Shown: piece after piece, positions 8,501-60,846 of the stretch
Numbering within the stretch: the stretch's first letter is position 1
Layout: every line of letters starts with the position of its first letter
Source: Chlorokybus atmophyticus
Lineage: Eukaryota; Plantae; Mesostigma and Chlorokybus algae
Assembly (NCBI GenBank): GCA_009103225.1
Contig: RHPI01000772.1
Coordinates: 490,499-554,498 of the forward strand
DNA length: 64,000 bases
Direction of reading: 5' to 3'
Notes under the pieces: generated by a model
The model's input: only the letters and a program-made list of their open reading frames with translations
Databases searched by the model: none
Told to the model about the DNA's origin: nothing
Translations under genes and position numbers: made by a program

Positions 8501-8614
8501 GTGAGGGGCGAAATGAGTGCGAGCGTGCACACACACGGGCAACTGCAGAGAGCTCACAATCACCACCAAGCACGCAGAGCGGGGGTCAATACGCGCGGAG
8601 CTAGGCACCAGCAG

Positions 8615-8656
<42 letters not shown>

Positions 8657-15913: not shown

Positions 15914-17519
15914 CACCAATAGAAATGGCCTCCCAACAGTTCGGCCTTGCCCACAAATCGAGTAGAGATCCAGCTATAACTTAATCAGGGATCCATATGC
16001 AAGCAACATATCCATTTTTGCACTCTTTGCGGCTGCAGCCACAACTTTGTTTGGTATCGAGCTGCCATTAAGGTCAACTAGCTGGTGTGCATTAAGTTTG
16101 GTATCTGTCTTTTTTTGAACTTAATAATAGCCACATCTTAAATTAAATTTTCGTTAGATCATGTATCAAGATTAATCTTAATGCATAATTTAACCAGAAA
16201 TGTTATGGCCGCAATTCGTGGCGAAAAACCAAAAGAGCCACAGTACACATGGTTTTCGTCTCGCCATCGCCGAGTTTCGAACCTGCGCGGCAGGATGTGT
16301 TGGGTTAGATCATGTAAGATTAATCTTAATGCGTGATATAACCAGAAATGTTATGGCCGCAGTTCGTGGCAAAAAACCACAAGAGCCACAGCAAACGGGT
16401 TTTCGTCTCACCATCTTTAAGGTTCGAACCTGCGCGGCAAAACCTGATAGTGTATCAAGCAACATCATAATGACCTAGCAATGGACCAGCTAGACTACGA
16501 CGACACGAGACGCCCTGCGACGCGTTTGTAAAGCATATACAAACTGCTTCAATTGTCTCACGTGCCGCAACGCATGCACCAACAGCTGCTTACAACGGCA
16601 TTATCGGTATATGTATATATATGTATATATACATACATATATATAGTCATACATATAAGTATATGGTTATATATATATATATACCGCGGTATTAATATAT
16701 ATATAGCACTTGTATCAAACAGATAAAGGTAAAGGCGGATTTTACCACTATATAGGTGACTTGGGGAGGGAGACTTTGTTCAACTTACCGTTTGTCCAAT
16801 CACAGCGCGACATTACCGGTTAATGTTTGCATTATGCGCTCTACGTCACCTGCTGGCGCAAGATTGGTTGCGGAGTTCTGGTCAAGTCTTTACGTGTTTA
16901 CCTCATGTGCTACCACAGTTTACCAACGATTATACATGCAAGTTGCAGCCTTCTACTCGCTTGCCCCGCGGCCTGCTACTAGCAGGCCACGGGGCAAGCC
17001 ATGCATAGGCCGCGGGGTTGAACCGGCAATTTGGCAATGATAAGATCATAAAATTATTATGGTTTGTAACAATGGAAAGATCGATCCTAGCGTTCCGAGT
17101 TTGTTAAGTATGAAGTCTTGTACCGTTGTTGGAACTGGTCACAATTTTAAAGATGATGTGTACAGCTTTAGCATGCAACGTGAATGCATTCTAATGTTAT
17201 CGTCGAGTCCTCAATTGTGTTAGGGAAAAGACGCATTGTTAACGAATTGTTCACAACTGTAATTGCGACTTACACAAGTCTTTCTCACGGCCTGAACCCT
17301 TGATTACGTAAACACCGAATCCTGTATATTGGAGATCCGGTACTTACAATCGTCACCGGCGGATTGCCGTTTGTGCCAGGTCGCAATAAAATTCCGGCTG
17401 CAGCTACAACATATGTACGGATCTGTCATAAAATCTACGAAATCCGCAAATAATGTCCGGCCTCGTCTATGACAAAGTTGCGGATTAAACCTTATATGCG
17501 AAACGCATTTCTACCGACA
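15914..17519. mobile_element. Non-autonomous CACTA/EnSpm-like element, copy 2, inserted in the E0 integrase
   Basis: Termini CACCAATAGAAATGG and CATTTCTACCGACA (degenerate TIR) with 3-bp TSD TGT (15911-15913, 17520-17522). Removing it rejoins GYRCTRQ..ALRALSSYFLLFG. Confidence 0.75.
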
Positions 17520-30540: not shown

Positions 30541-31795
30541 TACTGGTAGAATTGGGTTTCGGCAAATCAGGTTGAATCCGCAACTTTGTAATGGACGAAG
30601 CCGGACGATTTGCGGATTTCGCTTATTGCATGACGGATCCATATATAGGATGTAGCTGCAGCCGGAGTTTTATTGCGACCTGTCGCAATCGGCAATCCGC
30701 TGGTGACGATAGTACCGGATCCCCAATAATGTTGAGGATCGGTGTTTACGTAATCAAGGGTTCAGGCCGTGAGAGACTCTTGTGTAAGTTGCAATTACAG
30801 TTGTGATAAATTCGTTAATAATGCGTCATTACTTCATAACGCAATTGAGGACTCGACGATAACAGTGGATTGCATTCAAGTTGCATGCTAAAGCTGTACA
30901 CATCATTGAAATTGTGACCGCTTCCATTAACGATACGAGATTTCATACTTAACAAACTCGGAACGCTATGATGGAGATTCCATTGTTACAAACCATAATA
31001 ATTATACGACCTCATCATTGCCAAATTGCCGGTTCAACCCCGCGGCCTACTCATGGCTTGCCCCGCGGCCTGCTAGTTGCAGGCCGCGGGGCAAGCAAGT
31101 AGAAGGCTGCGACTTGCATGTATAATCATTGGTAAACCATGGTAGCACATGAGGTAAACATGTAAAGACTTGACCAGAACTCCGCAACCAACCTTGCGCC
31201 AGCAGGTGGCGCAGGGCGCATAATGCAAACATCTGCCGGTAATCTCGCGCTGCGATTGGACAAAACGGCAAGTCGAACAAAGTCTCCCTCTCCAAGTCAC
31301 CTTCATAGTGGTAAAATCCACCTTCACCTTTATCTTTTGAACACAAGTGGTATATATATATAGACATACCGCTGTATGTAAGTATATATGAAATATATTC
31401 AAATATGTATGTATATTTATAAATGTATATATGAATATATATTTATATATGTCTATATGTACATATAAATATACTTAAATGGATATATACATATACCGGT
31501 ATTGCCGTTGTACGCAGATGTTAGTGCATGCGTGATACATGCATTGCGGCACGTGAGACAACTGAGGCAGCCGTTAGGTTATATGCTTTACAAACGCGCT
31601 GCAGGGTGTCTCGTGTCGTCGCAGTCTAGCTGGTCCATTGCTAGGTCATATGCTGTTGCTTGATACACCAAGTTCTGCCGCGCAGGTTCAAACCTTAACG
31701 ATGGTGAGACGAAAACCCGTTTGCTGTGGCTCTTTTGGGTTTCTGCCGCGAACTGCGGCCATAACATTCCTGGTTAGATCACGCATTAAGATTAA
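30541..31795. mobile_element. CACTA-like element copy 3, left part
   Basis: Starts TACTGGTAGAATTGGG; reverse-complement homologue of about 16310-17519. Confidence 0.7.
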
Positions 31796-33999
31796 GTTGA
31801 TTAATTAAGTTAATCTTTTTAATACATAATATAACCAAAAACTAGGATGGAGGCTGGCAGGGCCCGTTGGAACGTGTATTAGGGTTTGGCGTTTTACGGC
31901 GCCGGCTAGGCGGTACATATGTCTGGTTGTCGTTGGCGGCGGCGGCGGCGGTCGTTCGTCCGTACTGGCGTGTGGACGTGACGGGTTGATGTGCGGCGTG
32001 GGAGCAGTCGCCGTAGACAGCCGCAGGCGCAGACGGCAGCCGAACAGCTGATGAAAGTACGTTTGCTGCCATGTGCTACGACTGTGTGACTGACACCGGC
32101 GGCGGCGATTGCTTAATATGTTCGTGTTGTGGATGTGACATGGCCGTCTGTATGATAGGTATGATGTGGTGGTGGTGTGGGGTGAGGTCAGGTGCCGCTG
32201 GTGACGACACTGGAGCAATCGAGAGTAGATTAACTACAGTTTTTTACATGTGAAGGTAGAATGGTGTTTAAGTAATTTTATCATGCTTTATGGTATTGTA
32301 CGGCAACTGTATGTGAACGATGTGAACAATGTGCAGGAGTTTTTATTCATGGCTAGTTTGTGCGAATGGGGATGTCTTTACTGTGGGTCCAATGTAAAAG
32401 TGGGTGATCTTTTCAAAGTTCGTCAGCATCTGCAAACTGCTACCTGTCGTTATTTTTATGCGGTTCCATGGTGGTGGTGAGGAGAGTGGTGCTGATATGT
32501 AAACCTTAGCCAAGGCTATTCTTTTTACCATTCAAGTAAGTTTGTGCTGTATTATCTCTATTGTATTATCTTGTTGACATTATTAGTACTTATGGTTTTT
32601 ATCATATCAGGTGGGACAGCGTCCTCGTCATGTTCGTCCATTGGAGCGTGCCTTTATGCAGCAGCCCGATTTTGTATGTGTTATTGCTATTGTAACTGTA
32701 ACATTATGTGTATGGGTTGTTGTTGTCTCATGTTGTATTATGTAGTGTGCAGGTACCTGGGCCCGAGCGAAACAAGCGTTCAAGGCATTCAAGGTATGTA
32801 TTCATGTGTTACTGTTTGTTTGGTTTTGCAATATGGTTGCAAAGTTAGTGTGGTTTGTTAATGTAGGGCAAGCAACCACTGATTGCCTTACCGGTTCCCG
32901 CTGCTGTGGAGGAAGGCAGTCCTGCCGTTCCATATGTTGTTGAAGAGGCAGCAGTGTTCAATTCATCTGCTCTGCAAGATCAGCTGGTGTCACATCGTGT
33001 ACGTGTTGGTGGTGTGCAGACAAGTGATTGCTCGTGGACATGTGTGTCTGTTTGTGATTGTTGTTCCTCATTTGTTGTTGTTGCAGGTTGTCTTGCATGA
33101 GGAACTTGCAGCTCGCGATAGGGAAGCCAGTAGGTTGCGGTTGCAAGTGGATGATATGGCGGAGATGTGGGAGGTGTCTGGTGTGATGATGCAGGAGCAG
33201 CTTGCTATTCGTGATGAGGAGAATGTGCACTTGCGGCAGCGACTGGATCATGCCCATGAGTTGATTGCAGGATTGTCGCAGCGTCTGCAACAACTAGAGG
33301 ATGCCGCGGTGCCGCGCGGTGCGGTGTCCATGTGTTACTTTTTGCTTCATGTTGTGTTGTACATACAGTGTTGCATTCATCTCGGATCTCATCTAGTGCT
33401 AATTTTTGTCATATTTTTTGTATGTCCAGATGCACCTGATGGCGTTGGTTGTACAGTGGCTTCTCCGGTTGTGCTGCACAGTGATGGCGGTATGTTGTGG
33501 GTTGTATGTGCTTGAATTGTGTGTTATGTGTTTGATATGTATTGGTTGAACAGGTGCATGTGAGGAGGTTGCAAAGGGTACAAAACAAGGGAAAACTCGA
33601 GGCAACAAAGGCAAGCCAGGGAAGAAGACTGGCAAGCGTGCTTTTGAAGAGATAGATCTTGAAAATGTGTTGTCATCTAGGCAACGCAAGGTGCGGCGGT
33701 ATTTTGTGGTGTATGCTTTGCCTTGTGGTGTGTGGTATAGTTATACGTGATGGAATCTACAGGCAAGAGAAATTCCTATGAGTATCAAATCTGGCACTGT
33801 GAGCTATATACTGCAACATGTTGCCAAGGTGGTTATCACTATCATTGAGCTGCAATTGGACGCCTTGACTTTAACAAGTAAGTTTGTTGTTGTACTCGGT
33901 TTGTGTTTTTTTGCTTTTGTGTTTGTTATTGACTGTGTGTTTCTAGAACAACACCAACTGATGGATCTTCCTACTGTGGTTGGTGCACGGTTACTTTGG

Positions 34000-34560
34000 T
34001 AAGCCTCGCACTCTACCTATGCTCTATACTTGCCCCTATCTTATTCCTTTCCTTTGCATCTATACTCAATACTACCCCTGCCTATCCTCCTATCTTCTAT
34101 CGCCTATCTCCTATTCTTATCATATTCCTACCCCTATCCCTCTTATTCCCCTATCCCTATTTCCCCTCTGCTATTTGTCTTTTTATATTTATCCCTCTCC
34201 CTATCCTCGTTATTTTCCTTATCCCTTTCCCTTCCACGCACTCTTATTCTCTATCCCCTATTTCCTATCCCTATCCTTATTTGTATCCCTTCCTATCCTT
34301 GACTCTATCCACTTTTCTCTCTCTCTCCCCCTGTTCCTATTCCTATCCCTGTTCCTATCCTCTACTTATCACTATCCTTGTTTCTTTTCCTTATGTATAT
34401 CCCCTACTCCCTATCCATTTCCGTTATTCCTATCCCTCTGCCTATCCATATTTGCATCCCTTTTCCTACTTTTCTATTCCTTTTTCTCGGTCTCCCTCTT
34501 CCTATCCCTATCCCTGTTCATATCATATCTTATCCCTTACACTGTCCTTATCCCACTGTT
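34000..34560. repeat. Degenerate pyrimidine-rich (CCCTAT-like) intronic repeat
   Basis: Visible low-complexity CCTATC/CTATCC units. Confidence 0.9.
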
Positions 34561-35954
34561 CTCTACTTTTTGCTAATTGGAAGCTTTTTTGTTGAGTTGC
34601 CTCTACCTTGCACATGTGACTAAATACGTTTGCAGTAATCGATGTCGCGGGAGTATTGAAGACGTACATTGCACATGTGTATTGTGCAAAGGGTTTTGAT
34701 ATTTGTGCACAGTGCTTTCTTGAACGATGTAGTTTATCTTGTATAGCATCGTGCAACAATGTTAGCCATGTAGGTGCTATTCGTGTGCAGCAAGTCTTTC
34801 ATATAGATCACGCTGCTTTACGTTTAAAAGTCTCGCAACTGTCGAAGGGCCCTGCTGAGGCTGTGGTTGATGAGGTATATTTGTTCCCTTTTTCTGGTGA
34901 TTGTTTGACGATGTTGCTATATATTGCTTTATTTAACCTGGTTTGTTGCACAGGGTTGCAAGCTATGCATGGAAATGCGTGAGAGGAAATCGATCAGACC
35001 ATCATACAGGTGTTGCTTGTGTGTTGCTTCGTGTTTGCATTAAATCGTGTTAATAATGTACATGTTAATAGAGGTGTTGTGGTGCATTCTGATTGGGCGC
35101 ATATGGCGGTACAAGCTATCTATCTACCTGTGTACGAGACTAGTAAGGTAAATGTCAACGCTATGGTTGTTTTGTCCTATCTACTGTTTAGTTCAGTTGG
35201 TTGTGATTTGTCCGTTTCATGATTGCGTTGTTGTTACAGGACTATGACGTGTTTCGTATCCCACTGGTAAAATTCAACAAAGGTGAGATCATGACCAGTT
35301 TAAGGGTGTGTGTATGTGCATTGTGTTAAATTCATTTAATTATGTTGTTTGTAGATAAAGCTAGGTTGAGCCACTTCCAATGGCATTGGCGACGTGGACA
35401 TCGTGTCGTTGTGGAGCGTGTTAGACAAACTGGTGAAATGAGTGTTGATATGAGCGTTCGAAGTTTACGGCGTGATATCGGCAGCATTTCCCCCTTTGTT
35501 GTTGTGTTGGATTGTGATGGTTGGTGTGAGGTAGGTTTATTAATTGTGTTTATATTATTGGGTTTGTTTGTCCTCATTGCATTGTTGTTCAGGTCAAGTT
35601 GAGTACTGCCGAGTTTTTCCGAGGCTTTGCACATGGGTATGATACCTCCGACCACACACGCAAATTCTTCAAGTTGAAGGATTGGCCAACAAAGGTTCGT
35701 TGGCATCTGTGACCAAGGAAATGATGTATTTGTGTATTGATAATAATGTTGTTTTGTATTGTTAGGCTTCTTTACAAGATGTGCTACCTGCGCTTTATGC
35801 AGATTTCAGTGACATGTTGCCTTTAAAAGAGTACACGCATCCAAACGGTGAATTAAATTTAGCCAATTATGTTCCTGAGGTATGTGTTGATTAATGTGGA
35901 TTAATGTGGTTGCATAATGTTATTGCACATTACCACGTTTTTGCTTTTTTCGGG

Positions 35955-37445
35955 GTAGGGTTGGGTAAGGTAGGGATAGATATAGGGAGAGGGATAGGGG
36001 TAGGGAGAGGGATGCAAGAGGGAGAGGGAGAGGGGTACGGTAGGGATCAAGTAGGGAGAGGCACAGGGTGAGGGATACAAGGAGGGACATGGAGAGGAAG
36101 ATAGATAGGGATAGGGACAGGAACAAGGGTAGGGAGACGGATAAGGATAGGGATAGGGAGAAGTAGGGAGGGAGCGGGAGAGGGAGAGGGAGAGGGTAGG
36201 GATAGAGATAGGGAGAGGCATAGGGCTAGGGGAGGGTTAGAAGAGGGAGAGGGAGAGGGATAGGGTTAGGGAGACGAACAGGGAGAGGGATAGAAGAGTG
36301 AGAGGGAGACGAAGAGAGAAAGGGAGAGGGAGACAGACAGCAACAGGGAGAGGGAGAGGGATAGGGTCAGGGATAGGGAGAAGGAGGGGAGAGCGGGGAG
36401 GGAAGGGGGGAGGGTAGGGATAGAGATAGGGAGAGGCATAGGGCTAGGGGGGGGTTAGAAGAGGGAGAGGGAGAGGGATAGGGTTAGGGAGACGAACAGG
36501 GAGAGGGATAGAAGAGTGAGAGGGAGACGAAGAGAGAAAGGGAGAGGGAGAGAGACAGCAACAGGGAGAGGGAGAGGGATAGGGTCAGGGATAGGGAGAA
36601 GGAGGGGAGAGCGGGGAGGGAAGGGGGGAGGGTAGGGATAGAGATAGGGAGAGGCATAGGGCTAGGGGGGGGTTAGAAGAGGGAGAGGGAGAGGGAGAGG
36701 GATAGGGAGACGAACAGGGAGAGGGATAGAAGAGTGAGAGGGAGACGAAGAGGGAAAGGGAGAGGGAGAGAGACAGCAACAGGGAGAGGGAGAGGGATAG
36801 GGTCAGGGATAGGGAGAAGGAGGGGAGAGCGGGGAGGGAAGGGGGGAGGGTAGGGATAGAGATAGGGAGAGGCATAGGGCTAGGGGGGGGATAGAAGTGG
36901 GAGAGGGAGAGGGAGAGGGAGACGAACAGGCAGAGGGAGAGAGAGAGGTAGAGGGATAGGGGTAGGGAGACGGATAAGGGTAGGGAGAAGGAGGGGAGAG
37001 CGGGTGAGGGAGAGGGAGAGGGAGAGGGTAGGGATAGAGATAGGGAGAGGCATAGGGCTACGGGGGGGTTAGAAGAGGGAGAGGGAGAGGGATAGGGTTA
37101 GGGAGACGAACAGGGAGAGGGATAGAAGAGTGAGAGGGAGACGAAGAGGGAAAGGGAGAGGGAGAGAGACAGCAACATGGAGAGGGAGAGGGATAGGGTC
37201 AGGGATAGGAAGGAGAGGGAGGGAGAGGGAGAGAGAGAGGAGTAGGATAGCGATATTGAGAGGTATAGAAGAGGGAGAGGGAGAGGGAGATGGGGAGGAA
37301 AAGGGACAAGGAGATGGATAAGGATAGGGCAGGGATAGAGATAGGGGGAGGAATAGGGAGAGGGATAGAAGCTGGAAAGGGGGAGGGAGAGGATCACGGA
37401 GAGGGAGAGGGAGAAGGAAAGGGAGAGGGAGAGGGTAGGGATAGC
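35955..37445. repeat. Purine-rich (GGGATA/GGGAGA) intronic repeat with higher-order tandem units
   Basis: Block GGGAGACGAACAGGGAGAGGGATAGAAGAGTGAGAGGGAGACGAAGAG recurs near 36270, 36490, 36705 and 37100. Confidence 0.95.
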
Positions 37446-39250
37446 GTTAGGCAGACATAGGGTTAGCGTGAGATAAGAGAGGGACTGGGTGTTTCAGATA
37501 TAGCGAGTTACATATTTTCGGAGAGTATGTGAGATGAGAATATGTTGTCACCATATTTATTTGCCGGAGCACATTCCTGCGGATTTGGGTCCGAAATTCT
37601 ACATTGGTTATGGATGCGAAGAGGAACGTGAGGTCGGGAATTCTGTTACGCATTTACACTGCGACATGTCTGATGCGGTAAGTGATTGAATTGTTGATTA
37701 TGGTAGTGTTATATGGTTTGATAACTTGGGCATCATCTATAGGTCAATGTGTTGATGTTCACTCGGGATCCATGCGGTGATGAAGTTCGTGCAGCGAAAA
37801 AGTTATCGGGAAAAGCTCGTATGCAAAATATGGTATGTATATTTGCTGACATATATTGATAGGTGTATGTCTACTTGCAATTGCCCCACTTGCCCCACTT
37901 GCAATTGTCGCTAGTTGATGATTTGTGTTAGGCATCTACTGGCGGAGCTGTATGGGATATCTTTCATCGTCAAGATGTCAACAAGCTGCGTGCATATCTG
38001 GTGGAGAATAAACACCGATTTCGTTATCTTCACAATGCCCCTTTGCAGGAGGTGATAATTACAAATCATCATGTTGTTTATGAGCTAATTCATTTGTGTA
38101 ATATTCATTTTGAGTTGTGGTTGTAGGTGACTGACCCAATTCAAGATCAGACATTTTATTTGCGTGTTGAACATTTATTGGAATTGCAAGAGCAATACGG
38201 TAAGCTGTTGGCTATAAAATGTGTTGCTATGGTTTTGTTGTTGTATGTTTAATAAGGGTTGGATTGATTGGTATCTTATTTGTCATGATTATTGATGTGG
38301 TAGGTGTTACACCTTAGCGTATTATCCAATATGTCGGAGATGCTATATTTATACCTGCTGGACGTCCACACCAGGTTCGCAATTTGAAGGTAAAGCTGCA
38401 GTCATTTTCAATCAACCCGTATTTTGTATTTGTATTTAATTCGCGTGCATTGATGTCGCAGTCTTGCGTGAAGTTGGCCATGGATTTTGTTGCACCGGAA
38501 AGTGTGGGTGAAATTTTCAAGATGACAAAAGAGCTCCGAGCATTGCCTCGAGATCATCGCGGCAAGGAAGATAAGCTGGAGGTAAGTAAGATGTGTCCCA
38601 TAAGGTGTCATATATTGTACAAATTACTGATGTTTTTCTTGCACAGATCCGACGCGTGCTGCTACATTTGGTTGCAAAGTTGGTGCAATGACATTGACAT
38701 TTGTAGATATGTTCGTAACTATGGTTTTTTATGTTAACGTGTGTCACTTTAATTTTAAGTGTGTGACGCTGCATGTGGTTGCCAAGTGCATGCCGTGGTG
38801 AGAGGGTTAATGCATGTGGTGGTGATAGGGTGAATCGTAGGGATAGAGACAGTGGTGAGAGTAGTTATTGTAATAGGGACAGGGATAGGGATAAGGATGG
38901 GCAAAGGATGGGGATAGAGATAGGGATAGGGTCAGGTGGGGATAGGGATGGGAATATGACGAAATAGGGACAGGGATAGGGTTAAGGATGGGCAAAGGAT
39001 GGGGAAAGAGATAGGGATAAGGACAGGTGGGAATAGGGATGGGAATATGACGAAAGAGCTCTTAGGGATGGGAATATAGAGGTTTGAGAATGGTGAGTGG
39101 TAGTGGAGGCATGGGTAAATGATAGGTATAGGGGTAGGGATGGAGTTAGGAATAGCTATAGGGATGAGGATGTGGGATGTATTGTTACATGCATTTTGAA
39201 CATCATATTCAGACATCAAAGGTATTACGTTATTACTACCATTGTATTGT

Positions 39251-39595
39251 TTAACGCTTACCAAAATGAGGATTTCTACGCAAACGTGCCCAAAATGCCT
39301 TGAATTTTGCTGGATTGCCTTGATCCACATTGTAGCCGTTTGGCGCGCGTGAATACTCGCGAATGAACTTGGCTTCTAAAGCATCCAGCTCGTCCTTGGT
39401 CGTAGCCCACCCCAAAGACCGCATCTCAACTTGGTTTTGAAACGGTTGAGTCACGTCCAAGTCTTGCTGCAACTTGCGAGGTGGGTGACGTCGGTGTTCA
39501 TGAAATCTTCGTACTAGGTTGCTTGTTTGTCCTATATAAACTTTGCCTTCATGTATATGCCGTAGTAGGTACACAAAACCATGACTACCCTTCAA
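39251..39595 (-). CDS. GIY-YIG endonuclease domain (predicted last exon of the RepHel gene)
   Basis: GFVYLLRHIHEGKVYIGQTSNLVRRFHEH...LEAKFI...NGYN shows the GIY/YIG, catalytic Arg, Glu and Asn pattern. Confidence 0.85.
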   Translation of the reverse strand: MKGSHGFVYLLRHIHEGKVYIGQTSNLVRRFHEHRRHPPRKLQQDLDVTQPFQNQVEMRSLGWATTKDELDALEAKFIREYSRAPNGYNVDQGNPAKFKAFWARLRRNPHFGKR

Positions 39596-41081
39596 GGCTT
39601 TGCGACGGCGCGGTTGCTGCGAGTGGCTTTGAGTAAAGGTGTTGCGGGTAGTGCGAGTGTGGCATCCATGCGACTATTGTTGAGTAAGTCACGCACCTCA
39701 TTCGCGACCTGCGTGCAAGATGTGTTTTTCAGAGCTCAACTTGTGCTTCAAATGCTACAACACATGAAGCATAGTACATACCTCATCAGATGTAGTGTTG
39801 TTGGTCTTTTTGTATTTGGGGTCTTGCTCATGGATGGCATCGAGGTAGTCAGCAGCTTCGCCATCGGAAAGTAAGTCTTTGGCCTCGTCAAACGAGCACG
39901 CCTTGTAGCAGACTACCAACTCCACCATTTGTTGGGCGCGAATTGGTTTTTGTCCAATTTCATTGTGTTTAGGGTTAAGTTCTGCGAAAACTTGATTCCA
40001 AGCCGCATAGGCAATAGTGCGTTTGGTGTTGGAGGGAAGGTCATGCCCCAAAATCTTCATGAAATGTTTGCAACCACCTAACACATCAAACACGCAATGT
40101 ATTATTAAATAAATAAAAATGTTGTAACTGTATTTTATATCATGAGGTTCATATGGATAGCACCTGTGATGATGCCAACTCCGTGTTCCTGCTTGAACTT
40201 GTCGCTAGCGCGAATGACATCTTTAATGAAGATGTCAGCTTTTGACTTCGTAAACGGGATGCTGTCGTAGTCTTCAGGGAGTACACCATTGTTGTCGAGG
40301 AGAAGCTTTTGGGCATTGGAGAGCTCCCAAGCGTCTTTGCGTGCACGCTTGCGTTGATCTGGAGCTTCCTCATGTTGTGTCTTAACCCGCTTGAAGATTG
40401 CGCGTGAGTCAAAAGAAGCTATCTGCATCAGCATGTCAGTGTTAACATATAAATAAAACAATTATATGTACATATCCATAGACGTAGAGATTGGTATTGA
40501 ATATGATGTAATGAATGCAATTGCATTGTGATTTACCTGTTACCATGGTATGGGTTGCATGTCAATGGCTTGAGGCATGTCCGTCAATGTCAACAAAGAT
40601 CGGTTAGTATTTCTTGACAACACAACATACCACAACCCGGGCACAAATGCATGTCGCATATTGATTATTGTTGGTGTATTAAGAGTAGCACCCTGTACTT
40701 TATGTCCTGTAATTGCATATGCTAGTTGTAATGGAAACGTCGATTTATAGAACGACTGGCCTTTGTGTGTATGTGTTTTATAAGTGGATCGTGTGACTAC
40801 AATGCTTTTTTAAGTGTCATTTAAACATACTTCAATAGCTGATACGCGTTCACGATAAAAGCGTAATTTTGTAACAACTCCTACAGCACCGTTGGCGGCG
40901 CCAATATTCAAGTCTAAATTAGCAAGTAAAATAACTTTAGCACGTATTGCAACTGATGTTAACATATGAAATTTGGGTTCGTTTATCCACTCTGACAAGT
41001 CAACTTCATTGGTACCATTGCTATATGGTATGATATTATGTATTTCATCTTCAGGAAATAGACTACGGATGGCTTTGTTGT
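39596..41081 (-). pseudogene. RepHel C-terminal part (Pif1 helicase motifs V/VI plus linker exons)
   Basis: KVILLANLDLNIGAANGAVGVV, FPLQLAYAITGHKVQGATL, YVVLSR. In frame with 49055 once E3 and one TSD copy are removed (QYNN|KAIRSLF). Confidence 0.9.
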
Positions 41082-42446
41082 TGTTACGGCCTAGCTACTA
41101 CAGCTGGTCATGTACAGTGTATATATAAGTTTAATTAGCGAGAGATAAAAGTTTAATGAACCTTGGTTGGATTATCTTGGTTTGTCATACAAGCTTTGAA
41201 GGCGTGTGTTTGTGTTTGAGCTTTAACACAAAGCTTTAACACGAATGCAATGCATCGCTAATTATAGGCCTGGCTAGTTAGAGCATTTGAATGCATCTGA
41301 TTAGAAGTGGTTGACTAGGGATTACCCTATTCATGAATGTATGGGCGTCTTGAGTAGGAAGATAAAAGCACATGGCTTTAGTATAATGATTTATTAACGC
41401 GATGTGGGCTTATGGGGCCAATCGCGTGAAACATCATAGGAAAAAGCATGTGTAATTATAAGGTTCATTTAGGCCAATCCAAGGCGGCTTATTTGGATCA
41501 GATGAATAGAGCAAAGTAGCCTACCTTAGGGTGAACAAAAAGGACTTCGCGAAATGAGTTCGCGAAGGGGTTGATTCACCTGTGAAGTGAATCAACATAG
41601 TGAACTAAAATAGTTCACTGGTTCAGTTACGAACATGAACTAAAATAGTTCACTAAGAGTTCGTGAGTGAACTAAAATAGTTCACTGGATCAGTTACGAA
41701 CATGAACTAAATAGTTCACTGAGTTAGCTACGAACATGAACTAAAAGTAGTTCACTAAGGGTTCGTAGTGAACTAAGTGAACTAAGTGAACTAAGTGAAT
41801 CACCCTAATATGAGGGGACTAATAGAAGAGGGAGCCAAAAGTGAATCACTGGTGAACTAAATTAGTTCACTAGTAGAGTGACTCATAAAGCCGACAAGGT
41901 AGTGAACTAAAGTTGATTCACTAGTGAATCAACTATTAGATCACTTCGCGACGCGACGTCGCGACAGAAAATCGGCTAAGGCATTTGCCCCCTCCCGCGT
42001 GTGCCGATACGCAGCGCGTGACAGCGCCGCCTACCATGGCCGCAAGCACAAAAATCGCGGATTAGCATTATTGGACACTTTGCAGAATGCCAGTGAACTA
42101 ATGCCGGGTGAACTAAACTAATCACTTGGGTGAGTGAATGGGGATCTGGTAGAAGGCTTCGAACCAAGTAGGTCTTAGCCAAGATAGTTCCTAGTAAAGC
42201 TCATGGCGATGGATTTCGCCATAAAAAAGGAGCCAGTCGCGGGTGGAGGGTAGCCGCCGCACGACTTGAGCTCTGGGCTTTTGGGGCTAAGGTAGGGGTA
42301 CCTAAGCTAGGTGACCATAACCCTTAAGTTGCCAAGTAGTTGTTCATTCAACGAAAGGTGGTTAAGGGAATGTACAGTCACTACATGTAAAGTGTGTGAT
42401 CACTGTACATAGTTTTGGTGATAAATACCCCCCGCCCGGCGTAACA
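41082..42446 (+). repeat. E3 5' LTR
   Basis: Highly similar to 47689-49054. Confidence 0.97.
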
Positions 42447-42534
42447 GCTGGCCTCGGAGCTTGGACATACGATTTTGAACCACTCAGGCCGTGGTTTGGG
42501 GCCACTTTGATTCGGAAATTAGCGCTTCCGAAGC

Positions 42535-43771
42535 GCATGCCGAAACAACGCCGGATTGGAAATTATCACAAGTGGCGTGAGACTTTTAGTAGTAGCGCCA
42601 GTGAAGAAGATTACCGCGAAAAAGAAGCCTATTTCAAAGAAAAAAGGCTAGTCGCGGCAATGGCGGAACAAGCGGAAGCTTCGAATCCACCGATTCCCCA
42701 GCTAGGGAAAAAGATGGAACGAAGAATAGCCGAGTTGTCGCCAAAGTACAAAAAAATAGCCTTGGCTTGTTGCAAAGAAGGCAAAAAGGCCAAGCAAGGC
42801 ATCTTGAGGCTAGTGAAGAACCTCGAGAAGAATGAGGAGGAGCTCACGCGCCTCCGTGTCCTTGGGGAGCAGAAAATGAAAAAACTCGAGGACAAAATAG
42901 ACTCGGTCCAAGTAGGACCAAGTACCAAGTATTTTTAAAAATTCCCCCGGCATGGACAGGCAAAAAAGGGGAGGATATAGACGCTTGGTGGAACCAAGTC
43001 GAAGTGACTTTGGCTACGGTTCTAGAAAGGCAAAGGTTGGGTTTTGCCGCGGGATACTTAGGTCCAAAACCACTTCAGTTGTGGAAGGACCATAGGTCTC
43101 ATTTGGTTGAGCCCACCTTTGAATCCCTAAAGGAGTTTTTGTTTAGCCAATATAGGACAGTGGACCCCGGGCTTGATGCCAGGGATAAGCTATCCGATTT
43201 GAAACAATCGGGCAAGTTGATCACGGAATTTGTGAGCCAATTCAACCTGTTAGCGGCTCAAGCTGCAAATGGGGGAAGGCCACTAAGCCTGATTGAAAAG
43301 GCCAACCTATTCATTCGAGCCTTGGATTCTAAGCTCCAAAAGCAACCAGATATTATGAGGTTGCAAAAGACCGATATAGAGTGGACTCAGGAGAAGTTCA
43401 CGGAGCTTGAGAATACGGCGAGATGGGTCGGCCGGAATTTGGCTAGCATTAACAAAAGGGATAGAGAAGAGGGTGGAGACAAATCCGGGGGAGGAAAGGG
43501 AAAGAAAAGAAAAGGATTTGCCCCTCAATCGGAGATGGAAAGTCCGGTTGAAAAGGAGAAGTCTTCAAAGACCCCTCTAAAGAAAAAGGGTAAAAAGCCG
43601 TTTGGCAAGAAACCCTTTAAGCCAGCCTACCAGGGCAAGGCAAGACTCTCCAGTGAAGAGAAGGAGAGAAGAGCTCGGGAAGGTTTATGCTTCAATTGTG
43701 GCGAAAAGGGGCATATAGCCTCCAAGTGCCCGAAGAAGGGAGCAAAGCCGACCGAGGATCCCACCAAGTGA
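42535..43771 (+). pseudogene. gag: E3 gag (one 1-nt frameshift near 42935)
   Basis: PPAWTGKKGEDIDAWW, LKQSGKLITEFVSQF, and CFNCGEKGHIASKC knuckle. Confidence 0.9.
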
Positions 43772-46700
43772 CGGTGTGGGGTGGTTGCTTGTATAGGAAC
43801 GGCGCCAAAGGAGCAAAGTAGTGGGCGACTTGAGAACAATAGTTGTATAGCTACAACGATGAAGTTGCCTATGAAATGCGATGTTTGTTTTGGGAATGAG
43901 TTTGAAGATTTGCCAAGAATTAATTCACTTGAGGTAGGGCATGAGCGAATTCTCATATGCGTGCCACTTCGTGAGTTAACAAGTACTTTGACAAATTATT
44001 GGCAACTAAAGCAAACTAACCCCGAAATTAAGGCGTGTGTTCTAACACCCAAATATTATGGTAAGTGGAAAAGGTTGTTAGGCGGTATGCGCCGTATGGG
44101 CACATTACCAAGGGCCAAATCATCTTTCGCCACTGACTTGCAAATATGGTGTGATGATGCAAGTGATCGCCGAGGTTCACACATCAATCCTAGGCTAAGT
44201 ATGGTCTTCGATGCATTAGTGAATGAGAGGGCGTGTGGTGTCTTAGTTGACACTGGTGCCTTAGAAAATTTCGTAAGTGCCGAATTGGCAAAAAGGGTCT
44301 CGGCCACCATTGAAACTACCAATGCTAGGGCAAGCCTAGTAGGTGAGTTACATTGTGAAGTAAGTGGCGTGACAGAGTTGCTAATTCGAATGGGGGATTA
44401 TAGGACCAAAATTAAGCTGTATGTGGTCAAGTCCCTTATTCCAGGCATAGACGTGATATTAGGTGATAGTTGGCAAAAGCACGTGAAGTTAGAATTGTCA
44501 AGCGTGCCACCTTCTATTACAATCACACAAGGTGACAAGCGTTTCGCTTTGACACCTAGTATGAACCGTAAGCCTAACAGAAGGAGTAAACCCACCATCG
44601 ACTCAGTTGATCAATGGTTAAAGGGTGACTCTGAATTGGCTGTAGGTTGCCTAAGCATAGTGGGGGACTTGGAAGAGTCAAGTGAAATTGATTGGGAAAA
44701 GGTACACCCGGTGGTGAGGGAGTTTATGGATATATTCTCCGCGGATCTACCAAGTGCACCGGCAAATAGGTTTGTCTCCCATTTAATCCCACTAAAGAAA
44801 AGGGCTGGGCCTCCGCCGATAAGGCCATTGTATAGGCTAAGTCCCAAGGAACGAGATGAAGCAAAGAAGCAGGTGAACTATCTCTTAGAAAGGGGTTTGA
44901 TAGTCGAATCGCAAAGCCCCTATTCGGCTAATGTAATTTTTGCCGAAAAGAAGGGAGGCAAGCTCTGAATGTGTGTTGATTATTATTATAGGTCATTAAA
45001 TGCACAAACGGTGATGAATGCCTTCCCCTTACCGCGTTTGGATGATTTGTATGATCAACTAGTTGGGAAGTCGTGGTTTAGCACCCTCGACCTAACTAGT
45101 GGTTATCACCAAATACCTATCGCGATAGAAGATAGGTATAAAACAGGGTTAAAAACCCCTATAGGTCATTATGAATATACGGTGATGCCATTTGGCTTAT
45201 GCAATGCGCTGGCCACATTCCAAGCGGTAATGAATGAAGTATTTAAAGAGGAGGTAGGGAAATTCGTCCTAGTGTACTTGGATGATGTTATTGTATTTTC
45301 AAGTACAAAAGAGGAACATGAGCTTCATTTACGAAAAGCCTTGAGTATGCTAAGGGAGCATAAGTTCTTGGCGAATTTCAAGAAGTGTGACTTCTTTGCT
45401 AGGGAAGTAGAGTACTTGGGTAATATTGTAAGTGAAGAAGGAATAAAAGGCGATCCAAAGAAACTCGAAAGAATTAAAGACTGGGCTGTTCCTAAGAATG
45501 TAACGGAATTACAGAAATTTTTGGGGTTTTGCCTATGGTTCCGCCGTTTTATGTTAGGCTATTCAATTATAGCCGCTCCACTCACTAGTTTGACAAGTAC
45601 CCGAAAACCCTTCGAATGGGGTCCTAAGGAGCAACAAGCCTTTGAAAGGCTTAAGGCTGCTATGACCTTACTTCCGGTATTGAAGTTGCCGGGAATGGAC
45701 AAGCCATTTGAGGTAATAAGTGATGCCTCTTTGGCAGGAACCGGGGCTATACTAGTGCAAGAGGGGCATCCAGTAGCCTTTGAGAGTTTCAAGTATAAGC
45801 CCGCGGAGAAGAATTACTCGACCACCGATCAAGAATTATTAGGTGTTGTGAAAGCGTTGCATAGATGGAGGTGTTGCTTAGAGGGGAGGCATTTTAAGGT
45901 GATAACAGATCACAACCCCTTGGTACACCTAAATACGCAACCTAATTTGTCGCGACGCCAAGTAAGGTGGCATGAGTATTTAGTGCGATATGATTTTGAT
46001 TGGGAATATAGGCCAGGTAGGATAAATGCGGCAGATCCTTTAATTGGCATCCCGCGTTATCCGAGGATTTGGCGTTACTTGCATTGGATTATGTGAGTGA
46101 CATTCCTAACCAAATAATCGCAAGTTATACTAATTGCCCGGAGTTCCTTTTGGAATTCAACCAAGTGTTAAAACCACATGGGGCATTTTGGTATAAAGAT
46201 GAAGAAAAGATTGCGGTTCCAATGGATGGGTCACTTAGGTCAAAGGTGATTGAAGAATCACATAATCCCCCTTACCGTGGCCATTTTGGTATAAGGAAAA
46301 CTACCGAGTCTTTTGCTAGAAGGTATTGGTGGCCGACCTTAAGAATTGATGTCGAAAGCTTTGTAAAGAATTGTGACTCATGCCAAAGGAATAAATCCGT
46401 AAGGACAAAACCGGCCGGGAAATTACAACCTTTGCCCATACCAGAGGGGGCTTGGAAGTCAATGTCTGTTGACTTCATAGTCCAATTACCTAAAACGGTA
46501 AAAGGGAATAATGGAATGGTTGTATTTGTAGACCGGTTTAGTAAGGTTGTTCACTTAGAACCAACTCCTCCAAAATTTACGGGCGAGGATTTTGCCCATG
46601 CCTTTTTCAGGAGATGGTACGCACAACATGGGATGCCCGTGGATATGATTTCGGATAGGGACTCGCGGTTCACTTCCGCCTTTTGGCGTGAGTTATGTGA

Positions 46701-47529
46701 TACATTAAATTTGGATAATAAGTTATCCACCGCGTTTCATCCTCAAACAGATGGGCAAACCGAGCGTGTGAATCAGACAGTGGAACAACTATTGAGGCAT
46801 TACTCACTAAAGAATATTAGAGATTGGGATACATATCTCCCTTTCGTTGAGTATGCCATCAATGATTCAGTGAATGAGTCAACGGGGATGACACCACTTT
46901 ATACTGGTTATGGCCGCCATCCATTGAGTCCAGTTGAGGCTTTAATGGAGAATATGGGGGCTAGGAAAAGAGTCAACCCCTCGGCTCAAATTTTGGCTCA
47001 ACGATTAGGGCAGGTGCAAAATGAGGCCAAGAGGGCCTTATTAGCAACCCAAAATCGTATGCGTCAATATGCCGATGCCAAGAGGGCAGAGGCCGTGTTT
47101 GAAGTGGGACAAGAAGTCCTACTTAGCACAAAGAATGTGAGGATGGAGTCTCTCGATGGGGCCCGAAAACTATTACCCCGATGGCTTGGACCATTTAAGG
47201 TAGTAGAAAAGATAGGGGCTGTGGCATTCAAGTTAGAATTGCCACCGAGTCTTAAGATACATAATGTATCTCATGCCTCGCTATTGAGAACCTATCACTC
47301 AGATGGGTCGGTGCAGCCACCACCACCCCCAATGTTTATAGAGGGAGATTGGGAGTATGAAGTGGAGGGTATAATAACCCACAAAGGCCGGAAAGGCAGA
47401 TCTCCCAGTTACTTTGTGAAATGGAAGGGTCATTCGTTCGAAGCATGTGAATGGATTGATGAACCTAACATGCGAGCACCGCTTCTGATAAAGAAATATT
47501 GGAGGGAGCTAACGGTTGCCCAAAGATGA
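43772..47529 (+). pseudogene. pol: E3 pol: protease, RT, RNase H, integrase, chromodomain
   Basis: VLVDTGA; YLDD; SDAS; HNPPYRGHFG...CDSC; SDRD; FHPQTDGQTERVN; YEVEGIITHK...YFVKWKG. TGA at 44966 (expected Arg) and a frameshift near 46045. Confidence 0.97.
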
Positions 47530-47688
47530 AGTCCAGGAAGGTCCATTTCTGAAGATATATATTTTCCGCCTTTAGAAGTAGTTCCACGTTTTGACCTATC
47601 AAGTTACTGGTCATGGCTTGTCTTCCTAGGTTGGAAAGCGTGGAGAAAGAAATTGAGCAGAGACGCTCAATAACTAAAGGGGGAGCAT

Positions 47689-49054
47689 TGTTACGGCCTA
47701 GCTACTACAGCTGGTCATGTACAGTGTATATATAAGTTTAATTAGCGAGAGACAAAAGTTTAATGAACCTTGGTTGGATTATCTTGGTTTGTTATACAAG
47801 CTTTGAATGCGTGTGTTTGTGTTTGAGCTTTAACACGAATGCAATGCATCGCTAACTATAGGCCTGGCTAATTAGAAGTGGTTGACTAGGGATTACCCTA
47901 TTCATGAATGTATGGGCGTCTTGAGTAGGAAGATAAAAGCACATGGCTTTAGTATAATGATTTATTAACGCGATGTGGGCTTATGGGGCCAATCGCGTGA
48001 AACATCATAGGAAAAAGCATGTGTAATTATAAGGTTCATTTAGGCCAATCCAAGGCGGCTTATTTGGATCAGATGAATAGAGCAAAGTAGCCTACCATAG
48101 GGTGAACAAAAAGGACTTCGCGAAATGAGTTCGCGAAGGGATTGATTCACCTGCGAAGTGAATCAACATAGTGAACTAAACTAGTTCACTAGTTCAGTTA
48201 CGAACGTGAACTAAAATAGTTCACTGGTTCAGTTATGAACATGAACTAAAATAGTTCACTGGTTCAGTTACGAACATGAACTAAAATAGTTCACTAAGGG
48301 TTCGTAAGTGAACTAAAATAGTTCACTCGTCCAGTTACGAGCATGAACTAAAAGTAGTTCACTAAGGGTTTGTAGTGAACTAAGTGAACTAAGTGAACTA
48401 AGTGAATCACCCTAATATGAGGGGACTAATAAAAGAGGGAGCCAAAAGTGAATCACTGGTGAACTAAGTTAGTTCACTAGTAGAGTAATTCATAAAGCCG
48501 ACAAGGTAGTGAACTAAAGTTGATTCACTAGTGAATCAACTATTAGATCACTTCGCGACGCGACGTCGCGACAGAAAATCGGCTAAGGCATTTGCCCCCT
48601 CCCGCGTGTGCCGATACGCAGCGCGTGACAGCGCCGGCTACCATGGCCGCAAGCACAAAAATCGCGGATTAGCATTATTGGTCACTTTGCAGAATGCCAG
48701 TGAACTAAATGCCGGGTGAACTAAACTAATCACTTGGGTGAGTAAATGGGGATCTGGTAGAGGGCTTTGAACCAAGTAGGTCTTAGCCAAGATAGTTCCT
48801 AGTAAAGCTCATGGCGATGGATTTCGCCATAAAAAAGGAGCCAGTCGCGGGTGGAGGGTAGCCGCCGCACGACTTGAGCTCTGGGCTTTTGGGGCTAAGG
48901 TAGGGGTACCTAAGCTAGGTGACCATAACCCTTAAGTTGCCAAGTAGTTGTTCATTCAACGAAAGGTGGTTAAGGGAATGTACAGTCACTACATGTAAAG
49001 TGTGTGATCACTGTACATAGTTTTGGTGATAAATACCCCCCGCCCGGCGTAACA
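47689..49054 (+). repeat. E3 3' LTR
   Basis: Highly similar to 41082-42446. Confidence 0.97.
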
Positions 49055-52000
49055 GTTGTTGTACTGTATAACATCATGAACATGAGAGCAAATTGTAATA
49101 GTATTTGCAGTAAAATTGCTTTCCCATGAACCATTCATGATACAAGAATGCAATGTATCTTCTACTAGACCTTGTGAAGGAACTTCACTACGAATGACAT
49201 TAAGAAATCTCAAGTATTCTTGATCAGAATCATGACGAATAGATGTGTTAAGTGCATGTTTGTGAGCAACATTCCAATAATGACTATGTCCATTATGACA
49301 CTTATCACAAGGTTGTGTGTTCTCACCACGACTATGTTTGCAAACCGGTGGTAGTTGTTTGTGATCACCAACAAAAATGATTTGAATCCTTTCTACAAAT
49401 GTTGTTGGGGCATATAGCTGCCGAACGCGCAGAAATAACAAATTAATGATCTCAGCAGTTAACATGGAGTATTCGTCAATGATAAAAACTTGAGTAGCAT
49501 TCATTATAGCATAACGCGTGTCTATGGGTGATAAATATGGTAAGAAACTGCCAGCACAAGGTATTCCAAAAGCAGTATGAACAGTGCGTGCAGTTGTACT
49601 CAATCAAATAGCTGCAGCTCCTGTAGACGCACATAGCATAACTTTTAATCCTAGATTTCGTAAGTGATATGTGGTCTTTTTGGTTAAATACGTTTTACCG
49701 GATCCCGGTGTCCCCGATATAACATGAAAACCCGAGTGTTGTGAAATAATGTGATCAAAGACACATTGTTGCTCGGGACTTAACAGGCCATGTGCAATAT
49801 CTTGAAACTCATGAACTCAACCTAATGCTTCAATCTGTTGTTGTGTTACAATTTCGTTGATGTGCAAATCATTCATATTAGGAATGTTGGTTGTTGTAGT
49901 ATCAACTGATTGTTTTCCAACCATTTGCAAAAAGTAATTGTTGTATTTGATACTCCGTAAATAAGTGTTTAGTACAATAGGTGATAATATGTTGTTCCAA
50001 AGTGTAGGTATTATCATCCAAATACCCACGAATAATGCATTCATCATAATACGAGCGTTGTTTATTGTCATCACTTAATAACTCATGCTCACTCCTAAAA
50101 TGAACTTTGCTTAATAGATGATTGAAAAAGTATCCTTCCATGTTATGCACAGGATGACAATCTGTAAATTTGACAATCTGTGGTTCTTTTAGTTGATTCA
50201 CAACAAACCCCAGTGAGTCAATTAACGTGTCTTTGGGCAGAACGTACCGTGAGGAGTTGTTGACACCTTTGGTGCGATGATATTGACGAAAGTACTCGAA
50301 AAAGGACACCAACAAGTTCCTGTGGGCGTGCACAATAAATGTCAATTGAATGTATCACAACATGTTGAGCACCTTGTAATAGTGTGGTACGCGATAAAGG
50401 CATATGAGAGTCGATGTAAATCACACGGCTTGATTTTTGAATAATAGGTATTTCCAAGCAAGTCATAGCAGCTTCAGATGGAGATAATGGTTTGGACAAG
50501 TACATGGCACTAATAAATCGTAATGCGGTATCTGATAAACCATTCAATCCCAACGATTTTGCATTGTCAATATTAATGTTTAGTGCCCCAAGCGGTTCAG
50601 TCTTCATAGTGTACTTAAGTATATATAAAGACCAATTATCATTTGTCACCTTCTGTACATTACAATGTGCACCCCATAAAAGTAACAACGACGTATGATA
50701 TGGAACAACATTACGATCTTGATAACGTGGTCGGTAATAATCATAACGTTTACTATTGCCATTGAACTTAGCTACACGCTCTGATTGTGTATCATATGGA
50801 AAACCATAACGACATTCACTATTGAAAGCACGACAACCACTTCCGACGGGGCTACAAATGTGTAATTGCTTTTTCCTTACATACTCAAATAACACACGTT
50901 GGTACATGTCAGTTGGTGGAATTATGGTTTCAGTGTTATCATCATACTGTCCCGGTATGAATGCAACAATCTCATTTGAAACACGTTCAATATCGTCTTG
51001 AGATAACCATAACATAACATGAGCATGTAAAGACCCACGATGTTGAGTTTCATAACGTATCACGTAGTGTTCTACATTACCTAAAATTTTCTTGCGAATG
51101 ATGTATGCTTGAAAAAACACTGTAAAACGATGATGAAATAATCTGGCACATTCAATGGTGCATCACGCCATGTAAAGTTTAAATCGATGTTTTTGAGAAA
51201 GTTTTAAACGTCAACAATTTCGGGCCATTTGGTTTCGCTTACTTCATCAGCAGTTAACGCGACAAACAGCGTAGGCATACCCCAATGATCAACCAAAGTA
51301 AGTAAGTCACCCAATTGTGTGCGATGCCCACTGGGTGATCCGATAATAGAACTAGGAATTTTGTACTTGATGATATAACGAACAGCATCTTCATCTGATG
51401 AATTTGGGAGATCCTTGCGATATTTCATGATGGATTTGTTCAATAATATGGTGCGACATTGAGTAACCAACATCAGGGCTTGACGGATGTGATACATTAA
51501 TAGTATGTAAGGTTTATACAAGGTGAACATGGAAAAAGCCATGGAACAACGCATTTGAATATAATCAGTAAAATGACGTATATGTACACCTTTAAAACTA
51601 CCAACACCTTGTGGAAATAACATTGGAAATTTGTACTAGCCTCAGAGGAATGAATTAAGATTGTATGCGCATTGGTGGCACGACAAGTTAAACCACCAGC
51701 AATAAAATTATTGGGTATATGTGTGTTGTTGGTGGGTGTCTCAATATGAAGTAATGTGGTCAGAACGTGTAATCTTTCTTGATTATTAACTACATTGAGT
51801 AAACCACGACGACATTATTCTCGCACAATGTGTTCAACTATCGTACTAGGTGCAACCGGTACTCCACTGCAAATAGAAGGATATTCCAACATGGTTAAAT
51901 ACTTTCTGACATGTGCATTGGTAATGAGCAATTCACTAAGTACTTCATGAAATGATGCAGGAACGTGATCAATGTTAAAGCAATAATTGTCCCACACAAT

Positions 52001-52454
52001 TAGTGGTCCTTTAAGGAATTAAGGAACTTGTCCCCAACATACCAACACCATAGCTATGTGGACCTTGACTGTCCAAACGAATGCTTGTATTAAAAAGTCC
52101 CAAATATTGTACAGCAACGGGATGTTCAGATAATACTTTGCGCATATATTCAGTAGAGTACATGACGGTGTGATGTCTTCGTGACGATTTATTGTGACAT
52201 GTTTGACAAACTCGCATTGAGGTGGGTGTACGTGTAAAATCACCCATGAACATGTTCGCAATAGCGTAAGGAGGTATCTCATGATTAAGATCATATAACT
52301 TCATTTGTTTGCGTTGAAATTGACCAAATAATGTCACACCACAAAGACCACAACATTGCATGTCTCCAATGAACATGTGTTGCTCTTCAATCCATGTGGA
52401 AAGTTGTTGGGTTGAGTAAGTCCAAGAAGAGTTGCCAACATCAACATTATCCAT
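49055..52454 (-). pseudogene. RepHel N-terminal part: Cys-rich region, HUH Rep endonuclease, Pif1 helicase
   Basis: CCGLC...CQTC; MLFPQG; WGMPTLFVALT; RYETQHRGSLHAHVMLW (HUH); YILKYTMK; Walker A ISGTPGSGKT; Walker B FIIDEYSML; IIFVGDHKQLPPV. Several stops and frameshifts. Confidence 0.93.
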
Positions 52455-52879
52455 GTTTCACCAATCATGTGTTCACTCAAAGTCCAATAACCAAATGTCA
52501 CTACTCCTAATAACACACCTGTGCCACTCAAGTAGCCACAAATGCCCACCGCCACAACGTCCGCGCCAACAGCTACGCCGCCACCAGCTCCAAACCCTCA
52601 ATAAAATTGAGCTTGAAGGGCGTTATGTTGAGAAACGTATGTGTAGTAACATGTTTTTGATTGGTGATTATGTTTTTTGATTGGATATGACAATATCATG
52701 CCTATTTACATTGCAAGAGATTACACAAGCTCAACTCCTATTGGTTCAATCATAATCAGAAACAACCAATCGGCGACGGAGAAAATATTGTTAATCACAA
52801 TTACCACTATGCTTACCCCTATCAAAATCCCTACAACTACCCTATCAGTACGATTATTGACTATTGTCAACTTCGCCAA

Positions 52880-53290
52880 CTTCGCCAACTCCGTGAACAC
52901 TATCCCTATTGCCGTCCCGGTCTCTTTCCGCATTCCAATCCTTATCCTTACTGTTCGCGCAACACACTTGGGCAGCGTAGGATACTAATAGTGCCACTGA
53001 TATTATCCCTATTCTTGTCCCTATCCCTACCAGCGGACACTATCCCTATTGCCGTCCCTGTTTTTTTCTCTATTCGGATCCCTATCTCTACTGTTCGCGC
53101 AGTTGGGCGGCGTAGGATGCTGATAGTGCCAAAGGCATTATCCCGATTCTTTGCCTTATCCCTATTGCCGTCCCTATCTCTTGGCCTATTCGGATCCCTA
53201 TCCCTTCTGTTCGCGCACACACTTGGGCGGCGTAGGATACAAATAATGCCAAAGGAATCATCCCTATTCTTTTCCCTATCCCTATCGCAC
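52880..53290. repeat. Degenerate CCCTAT-type tandem repeat upstream of RepHel
   Basis: Repeated ACTATCCCTATTGCCGTCCC and CGCACACACTTGGGCRGCGTAGGAT blocks. Confidence 0.8.
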
Positions 53291-53499
53291 TATCGACACC
53301 TTACGCCGACTTTAGGGTGCCGCGCAAAACGCGGGCCAACAAACAACGCACGCAAAACGGGTGCCGACTACCGCGGTAGGGCATCACCTTTAAAATGCCT
53401 GGTTGCGCCTGGTATCGACATAATCGATGCTTGACAAATAGCAAAGAAAATACAACGTCGACAAAGTCGGATACCTTTTAACATTGACAGCCTAATAAG

Positions 53500-60627: not shown

Positions 60628-60846
60628 NNNNNNNNNNNNNNNNNNNNNNNNNNNNNNNNNNNNNNNNNNNNNNNNNNNNNNNNNNNNNNNNNNNNNNNNN
60701 NNNNNNNNNNNNNNNNNNNNNNNNNNNNNNNNNNNNNNNNNNNNNNNNNNNNNNNNNNNNNNNNNNNNNNNNNNNNNNNNNNNNNNNNNNNNNNNNNNNN
60801 NNNNNNNNNNNNNNNNNNNNNNNNNNNNNNNNNNNNNNNNNNNNNN
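60628..60846. other. Assembly gap (N run)
   Basis: N run seen directly. Confidence 0.99.

Follow-up and report, generated by a model that had tools for sequence, protein, structure and literature searches.

Two converging genes inside a block of inserted DNA

Analysis of a 64,000-nt window of the Chlorokybus atmophyticus genome (positions throughout are those of the whole window) revealed a block of inserted DNA occupied by two converging genes (Table 1). On the + strand lies a multi-exon gene encoding the catalytic half of a KDM3-type JmjC histone demethylase, and on the - strand lies a RepHel gene of Helitron type that ends with an open reading frame (ORF) for a GIY-YIG nuclease. The block is 21.66 kb long, or ~13.7 kb after subtraction of a nested long terminal repeat (LTR) retrotransposon, and it splits one of three copies (A, B and C) of an element with terminal inverted repeats (TIRs). 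The last base of the JmjC stop codon is 38691 and the GIY-YIG ORF stops at 39251-39253, placing the two genes 560 bp apart, as an earlier note on this DNA had proposed. Apart from ~0.4 kb and 1 kb at its ends, the block is taken up by these two genes.

That the block was inserted is indicated by the other two copies of the surrounding element. The stretch ~31842-53499, which interrupts copy B, is absent from both paralogs in the window: in copy A (15909-17516, reverse orientation) the two arms are joined directly, and in copy C (1262-4222) they are also joined, with an unrelated insertion elsewhere in that copy. All three copies have in common their outer ends, with a 15-bp TIR (CACCGGTAGAAATGG). 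Because both the JmjC gene and RepHel lie inside the DNA that is missing from copies A and C, the JmjC gene is inserted DNA and not a host locus.

The earlier note had called the split copy CACTA-like. The interruption is demonstrated by the continuous copies A and C, but the CACTA label is not established, as the three copies are non-coding with no transposase found and a 3-bp duplication (ACA/ACA) flanks copy A alone. The outer 15-bp TIRs would be compatible with the HLE2 type (PMC11417382), but there is no conserved stem-loop after the TIR, the flanks are not T-T, and DUF6570 was not found. The flanking element contains an internal palindrome at ~31774-31838, and copy A carries a 140-bp tandem duplication at 16153-16439.

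Comparison of the two ends of the block revealed neither inverted nor direct terminal repeats beyond the level of shuffled controls, a pattern that a Helitron would show and a TIR or LTR transposon would not. On the RepHel strand (-) the block ends in ...CCATCCTAG followed by T, that is, CTAG and then T, which is compatible with the CTRR end of Helitrons. No local inverted repeats were found near the block ends, and the hallmarks of HLE2 elements were not recovered either: no terminal inverted repeat between the block ends beat shuffles, and DUF6570 was not found in the block. The two junctions share an imperfect repeat (9/12) that is indistinguishable from chance, with no clear target duplication; it might represent a Mutator-like target duplication of 10-12 bp, but the two sides agree at 9 of 12 positions only and TIRs are absent. 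The right edge is uncertain by ~8 bp and the left edge by ~10-45 bp (31796-31850), the latter owing to the presence of a palindrome and of an indel of 14 bp. The RepHel-proximal end of the block (53300-53499) is dense in palindromes, for example CTACCGCGGTAG and CCGCGCAAAACGCGG.

Within the block, neither another transposon protein domain nor a second pair of ends was found in the JmjC half, and the stretch between the JmjC gene and RepHel is free of sequence from the flanking TIR element.

The KDM3-type JmjC gene

A tblastn comparison with 78 plant KDM3 proteins gave matches on the + strand alone, at 35351-38593, from which we built a spliced model of ten exons (35355-35530, 35593-35694, 35766-35879, 37570-37677, 37743-37832, 37932-38051, 38127-38199, 38304-38389, 38462-38581 and 38647-38691). 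All introns are GT-AG, and the 343 codons contain no frameshift and one in-frame stop. The iron-binding triad is intact, with H-C-D at 37657-37665 (in the motif T-H-L-H-C-D, 37648-37665) and the distal His at 38369-38371; these positions agree with the earlier note, whose multi-exon JmjC gene is borne out by the model. The Thr that binds 2-oxoglutarate (2OG), three residues ahead of the first His, is also retained; the residue set of the KDM3/JHDM2 group consists of H, D and H plus T and K (PMC9029850). The stop, a TAG at 38315-38317, stands where plant KDM3 proteins keep a conserved Trp. Use of an alternative splice acceptor at 38316-38317 would bypass the TAG but break the frame, and was rejected on that ground.

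The relationship to plant KDM3 proteins is seen at several levels. In blastp searches the spliced product (with X at the stop) matched angiosperm proteins named 'lysine-specific demethylase JMJ25-like' at NCBI (E 1e-97, 41-46% identity), and the best solved-structure matches of its pieces were human KDM3B and JMJD1C. The intron following V-R-N-L-K has a counterpart at the equivalent position in land-plant KDM3 genes, as seen in unspliced ORFs of angiosperms. An exhaustive search of representative proteins with the JmjC sequence returned ordinary angiosperm KDM3 genes, and P0168 and P0169 come from contigs that consist of a plain JmjC gene or transcript and have no RepHel.

Upstream of 35351, tblastn recovered nothing of the N-terminal ~900 residues that plant KDM3 proteins have, including their cysteine-rich zinc-finger/RING part. 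The + strand upstream of the JmjC exons does contain a weak match to a C2H2-like zinc finger (32229-32477, Pfam, E 0.022) and a clear coiled coil (~33050-33330), for which an Atlas search of the ORF returned generic coiled coils. The zinc finger and coiled coil may be exons of the JmjC-containing gene. The gene is the catalytic half of a KDM3, apparently joined to a different N-terminus, and not a whole captured KDM3.

RepHel, shared repeats and possible further copies

The RepHel gene runs from 52457 to 39254 on the - strand and is split at 41082-49054 by a nested chromovirus. An N-terminal region (52457-51680) is followed by Rep, recognized by Helitron_like_N (E 2e-10) and by the motifs HAH and Y-I-L-K-Y (Y-x-x-K-Y) within 50221-51162; the match of Rep to the HLE1 element Helraiser (7LCC) is weak and distant. 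The helicase is of PIF1 type (PIF1, AAA_30 and Pif1_2B matches), breaking off after 49816-49055 and resuming at 41081-40543, and the helicase of relatives is continuous across the point at which the chromovirus inserted. The chromovirus itself encodes gag, protease, reverse transcriptase (RT), RNase H, integrase and a chromodomain; its LTRs are 92% alike, and it is flanked by a 5-bp duplication (GTTGT at 41077-41081 and 49055-49059). An exact-match query with the RT ORF retrieved no record. Both LTRs carry tandem repeats of 34-35 bp (TGAACTAAAATAGTTCAC...), at 41601-41776 and 48170-48383.

The nearest RepHel relatives (L001-L006, which are collinear) are 44-50% identical and come from eukaryotic contigs of two JGI metagenomes. 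Two of these, L002 (GIY-YIG at 14929-15270) and L003 (GIY-YIG at 14019-14330), which are 45% identical, have the same order of RepHel followed by GIY-YIG on one strand. L002 and L003 shared no DNA similarity that would define the ends of the element. A set of 5.8 billion proteins contained matches to the GIY-YIG ORF and to the JmjC piece at 37-53% only and no close relative of either, and a metagenome scan with the GIY-YIG ORF gave no match.

Comparison of the two genes with each other showed that their states of decay are alike. RepHel contains at least four in-frame stops and at least four frame changes in ~1250 codons, although some of the frame changes could be introns, and its stop density of ~1 per 300 codons is close to the 1 per 343 codons of the JmjC gene. 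Given the similar number of stops per codon, the earlier description of the genes as similarly decayed is a fair one. Both genes were probably open when the block landed, which fits the similar lesion density per codon. This copy of the JmjC gene, and of the element as a whole, is dead.

As the earlier note had observed, the two genes also share a repeat. The ATAGGG/CCCTAT motif belongs largely to the block, which contains 74 of the 79 motifs in the window, in four arrays that lie on both sides of both genes. One of these arrays is a satellite in an intron of the JmjC gene. Words related to this satellite reached a depth of up to ~2,660 in sequencing reads, compared to ~3 for unique stretches, indicating that the repeat is very abundant genome-wide.

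Read data from three low-coverage DNA runs, which assembled into patchy contigs, bear on the presence of other copies. Contigs over the GIY-YIG and helicase parts matched the window exactly. At 38121-38543, two read contigs differed by 1.4-3% from the window and also from each other, variation that hints at further near-identical copies. At 38363, where the window has CGT (Arg), one of these contigs reads TGT, which encodes the Cys of the KDM3 consensus A-G-C-P-H-Q; it shares the TAG at 38315. The sample thus holds at least two near-identical dead versions of the TAG-bearing JmjC exon.

Table 1. Coordinates of the inserted block, its genes and repeats, and the arms of the interrupted TIR element
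Feature	Start	End	Strand	Basis or remark
Inserted block (whole)	31842	53499	-	Copies A and C lack it
KDM3/JMJ25-type JmjC half of the cargo gene	35355	38691	+	10 exons, 343 codons; tblastn and spliced model
Possible N-terminal exons of the cargo gene	32229	33512	+	Weak C2H2-like zinc finger, coiled coil
N-terminal region, Rep and first helicase half	49055	52457	-	At least 3 stops, at least 4 frame changes
PIF1-type helicase, C-terminal part	40543	41081	-	One in-frame stop, 40810-40812
Two overlapping stop-free stretches, helicase to GIY-YIG	39758	40461	-	No family match
GIY-YIG nuclease ORF downstream of helicase	39254	39673	-	Pfam PF01541, E 4e-12
Nested Ty3/chromovirus LTR retrotransposon	41082	49054	+	LTRs 41082-42446 and 47689-49054
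CCCTAT-type array upstream of JmjC exons	33990	34600	.	Motif scan
AGGGAG/ATAGGG satellite, 218-bp higher-order unit	35984	37435	.	Intron between JmjC exons 3 and 4
ATAGGG-type array (91 bp x 2)	38872	39055	.	560-bp spacer between the genes
CCCTAT-containing 135-bp tandem array upstream of RepHel	52897	53300	.	Then short palindromes to 53499
Left arm of interrupted copy B	30542	31841	+	Flanking TIR element
Right arm of interrupted copy B	53500	53752	+	Flanking TIR element

Elsewhere in the window, a 3-kb inverted duplication (5586-8788 versus 64000-60443, 87-91% alike) lies near the window ends, and each of its arms adjoins an assembly gap (N runs at 5359-5585 and 60628-60846).

Origin and possible role of the probable cargo gene

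We propose, at a probability of roughly 0.45, that the interval is a dead, large Helitron-like element with a retained, converging KDM3-type gene that countered silencing. Of the parts of this proposal, that the JmjC gene is the cargo of a mobile unit is likely, that this mobile unit is the Helitron itself is somewhat favored, and an anti-silencing role of the cargo is tentative and rather doubtful. The element would have been ~13.7 kb long before the chromovirus landed in its helicase, with RepHel, GIY-YIG and, at its 3' side, the converging multi-exon gene. The JmjC half of a KDM3 gene would have been captured as DNA, introns included, and capture by read-through at the 3' end would fit its position. 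The data show that the whole block inserted into the TIR element and that its two genes decayed at similar rates thereafter. While the element was active it may have kept the gene because the product removed mono- and dimethylation of histone H3 lysine 9 (H3K9me1/2) from its own chromatin, weakening heterochromatin silencing. The earlier idea of a Helitron with a captured eraser is supported in part, insofar as the gene is not a host locus but lies with RepHel within one inserted block that has Helitron-like ends (no TIR, no LTR, and CTAG followed by T) and no second transposon gene; it does not stand insofar as the captured part is the catalytic half only.

Several observations weigh against this proposal. 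The junction is uncertain by 10-45 bp, a 5' TC is absent at the block end, and a search for a 3' hairpin gave nothing better than shuffles. The assessment covered a single copy. The gene itself has an in-frame stop in this copy; among the 73 columns with at least 90% conservation in plant KDM3 proteins, 22 are changed and 51 kept, and degradation has also affected the S-W-E-P...W-R-A block toward the beginning of the domain. JmjC is absent within 10 kb in the distant RepHel relatives that have GIY-YIG; since GIY-YIG is shared with these relatives and JmjC is not, GIY-YIG is old in the lineage and JmjC was added later. Finally, the variant read contig shares the TAG, indicating that at least some copying took place after the gene had died.

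The first alternative, which we consider unlikely, is that the JmjC gene is indeed Helitron cargo but a useless passenger, a fragment taken up by 3'-end read-through as in maize captures. The gene comprises the catalytic KDM3 half alone with the normal N-terminus missing, its location at the 3' side is that of DNA captured by read-through, conserved KDM3 positions are altered, and the stop is common to this copy and the variant contig. Helitron-captured gene fragments are usually short, chimeric and decayed, and captures in maize and other plants resemble the case here in the DNA-level uptake of host exons and introns downstream of RepHel. Unlike the usual captures, however, the ten exons are all in frame and span the whole catalytic domain, and they retain intact splice sites, the catalytic residues and a single stop, even though RepHel is equally old and damaged. 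In addition, the product is ~45% identical to every plant KDM3 found, a comparison that lay outside the alga's own KDM3, suggesting that the capture may not be recent.

A second alternative, which we regard as a minor contender, is that the locus is a composite, in which the JmjC gene belongs to a separate nested non-autonomous element, or in which the long form of the element with 15-bp TIRs (copy B, 30542-53752) carries a dead Helitron together with the JmjC gene. The outer ends common to copies A, B and C allow B to be read as the long form from which A and C derive by deletion; the insertion lacks a 5' TC and a 3' hairpin, and the relatives end with GIY-YIG and have no JmjC. Such a composite is harder to reconcile with the lack of any flanking-element piece between the genes, with the lack of a second end pair or second transposon gene in the JmjC half, and with the same repeat motif on both sides of both genes. 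The long-form reading of copy B also leaves the JmjC gene and RepHel in one mobile unit. An ordinary host gene or pseudogene merely beside a Helitron is close to refuted by the empty sites: both the KDM3 type of the gene and its introns are those of plants, but it lies wholly inside DNA missing from copy A as well as copy C, lacks the N-terminal half of a normal KDM3, and has variant copies in the reads.

In the literature that we searched, there was no description of a Helitron with KDM3 or JmjC cargo, and the main text of the HELIANO study, which lists 20 captured domains, does not name JmjC among them (PMC11417382). Two elements in that main text are nonetheless comparable to the Helitron-like element proposed here. 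The HLE2 element HelenSM92 of Sphagnum magellanicum is also a streptophyte RepHel element with GIY-YIG as a stable extra coding region, but it has short TIRs (12-16 nt in HLE2) and T-T sites, whereas the insertion here has no TIR at its ends and no DUF6570 was found; no JmjC is reported for HelenSM92 in the main text (PMC11417382). HelenPi572, a proto-Helentron of Phytophthora infestans that contains SET and TIR domains, is alike in having histone-modifying cargo, but its SET domain is of the writer type and its host belongs to another kingdom, whereas the KDM3-type JmjC is of the H3K9me1/2 eraser type (PMC11417382).

Plant KDM3 proteins remove H3K9me1/2, and the host KDM3/JHDM2 proteins (IBM1/JMJ25 and JMJ24-29) resemble the cargo product in their 41-46% identity, the triad with Thr and the shared intron position (PMC9029850). 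Fungal DNA transposons (Kyakuja/Dileera/Zisupton and others) with TET/JBP genes provide a precedent for a mobile 2OG/Fe(II) dioxygenase capable of removing a mark of silencing, although the mark is 5-methylcytosine in DNA and not H3K9 methylation, and the enzyme family, transposon class and host are all different (PMC12730594). Compared to the host proteins, the gene here lacks the N-terminal zinc-finger/RING part, lies inside transposon DNA, contains a stop and is changed at conserved positions.

VANC, a protein of the VANDAL transposons, is not known to contain an enzymatic domain or to derive from a captured host enzyme, and its carrier is a TIR transposon, unlike the Helitron-like block here. 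The likeness lies in the function: VANC of the Mutator-like VANDAL elements of Arabidopsis is a transposon-encoded factor for anti-silencing of its own family (PMC5735166, PMC10398659), and the system includes repeated target motifs in VANDAL non-coding regions (PMC5735166). By analogy, the element might have a modular 'effector slot', in which the N-terminus of the converging gene's product, a zinc finger for DNA binding with a coiled coil for dimerization, recognizes the element's own ATAGGG arrays and is fused to a KDM3 JmjC domain (or to a RING ligase in a sister family), thereby stripping heterochromatin from the element, but we regard this arrangement as improbable.

Because the copy described here is dead, its value is that of one member helping to define a family. 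Transposon silencing works through H3K9 methylation and DNA methylation, and few transposon-encoded countermeasures are known, namely VANC in Arabidopsis and TET/JBP on fungal transposons. If the proposal of a retained KDM3-type cargo gene is true, a Helitron that kept an H3K9 demethylase would represent a direct enzymatic counter-defense, in which a host chromatin enzyme was turned on the host, in an alga closely related to land plants in which the KDM3 family makes its first appearance.

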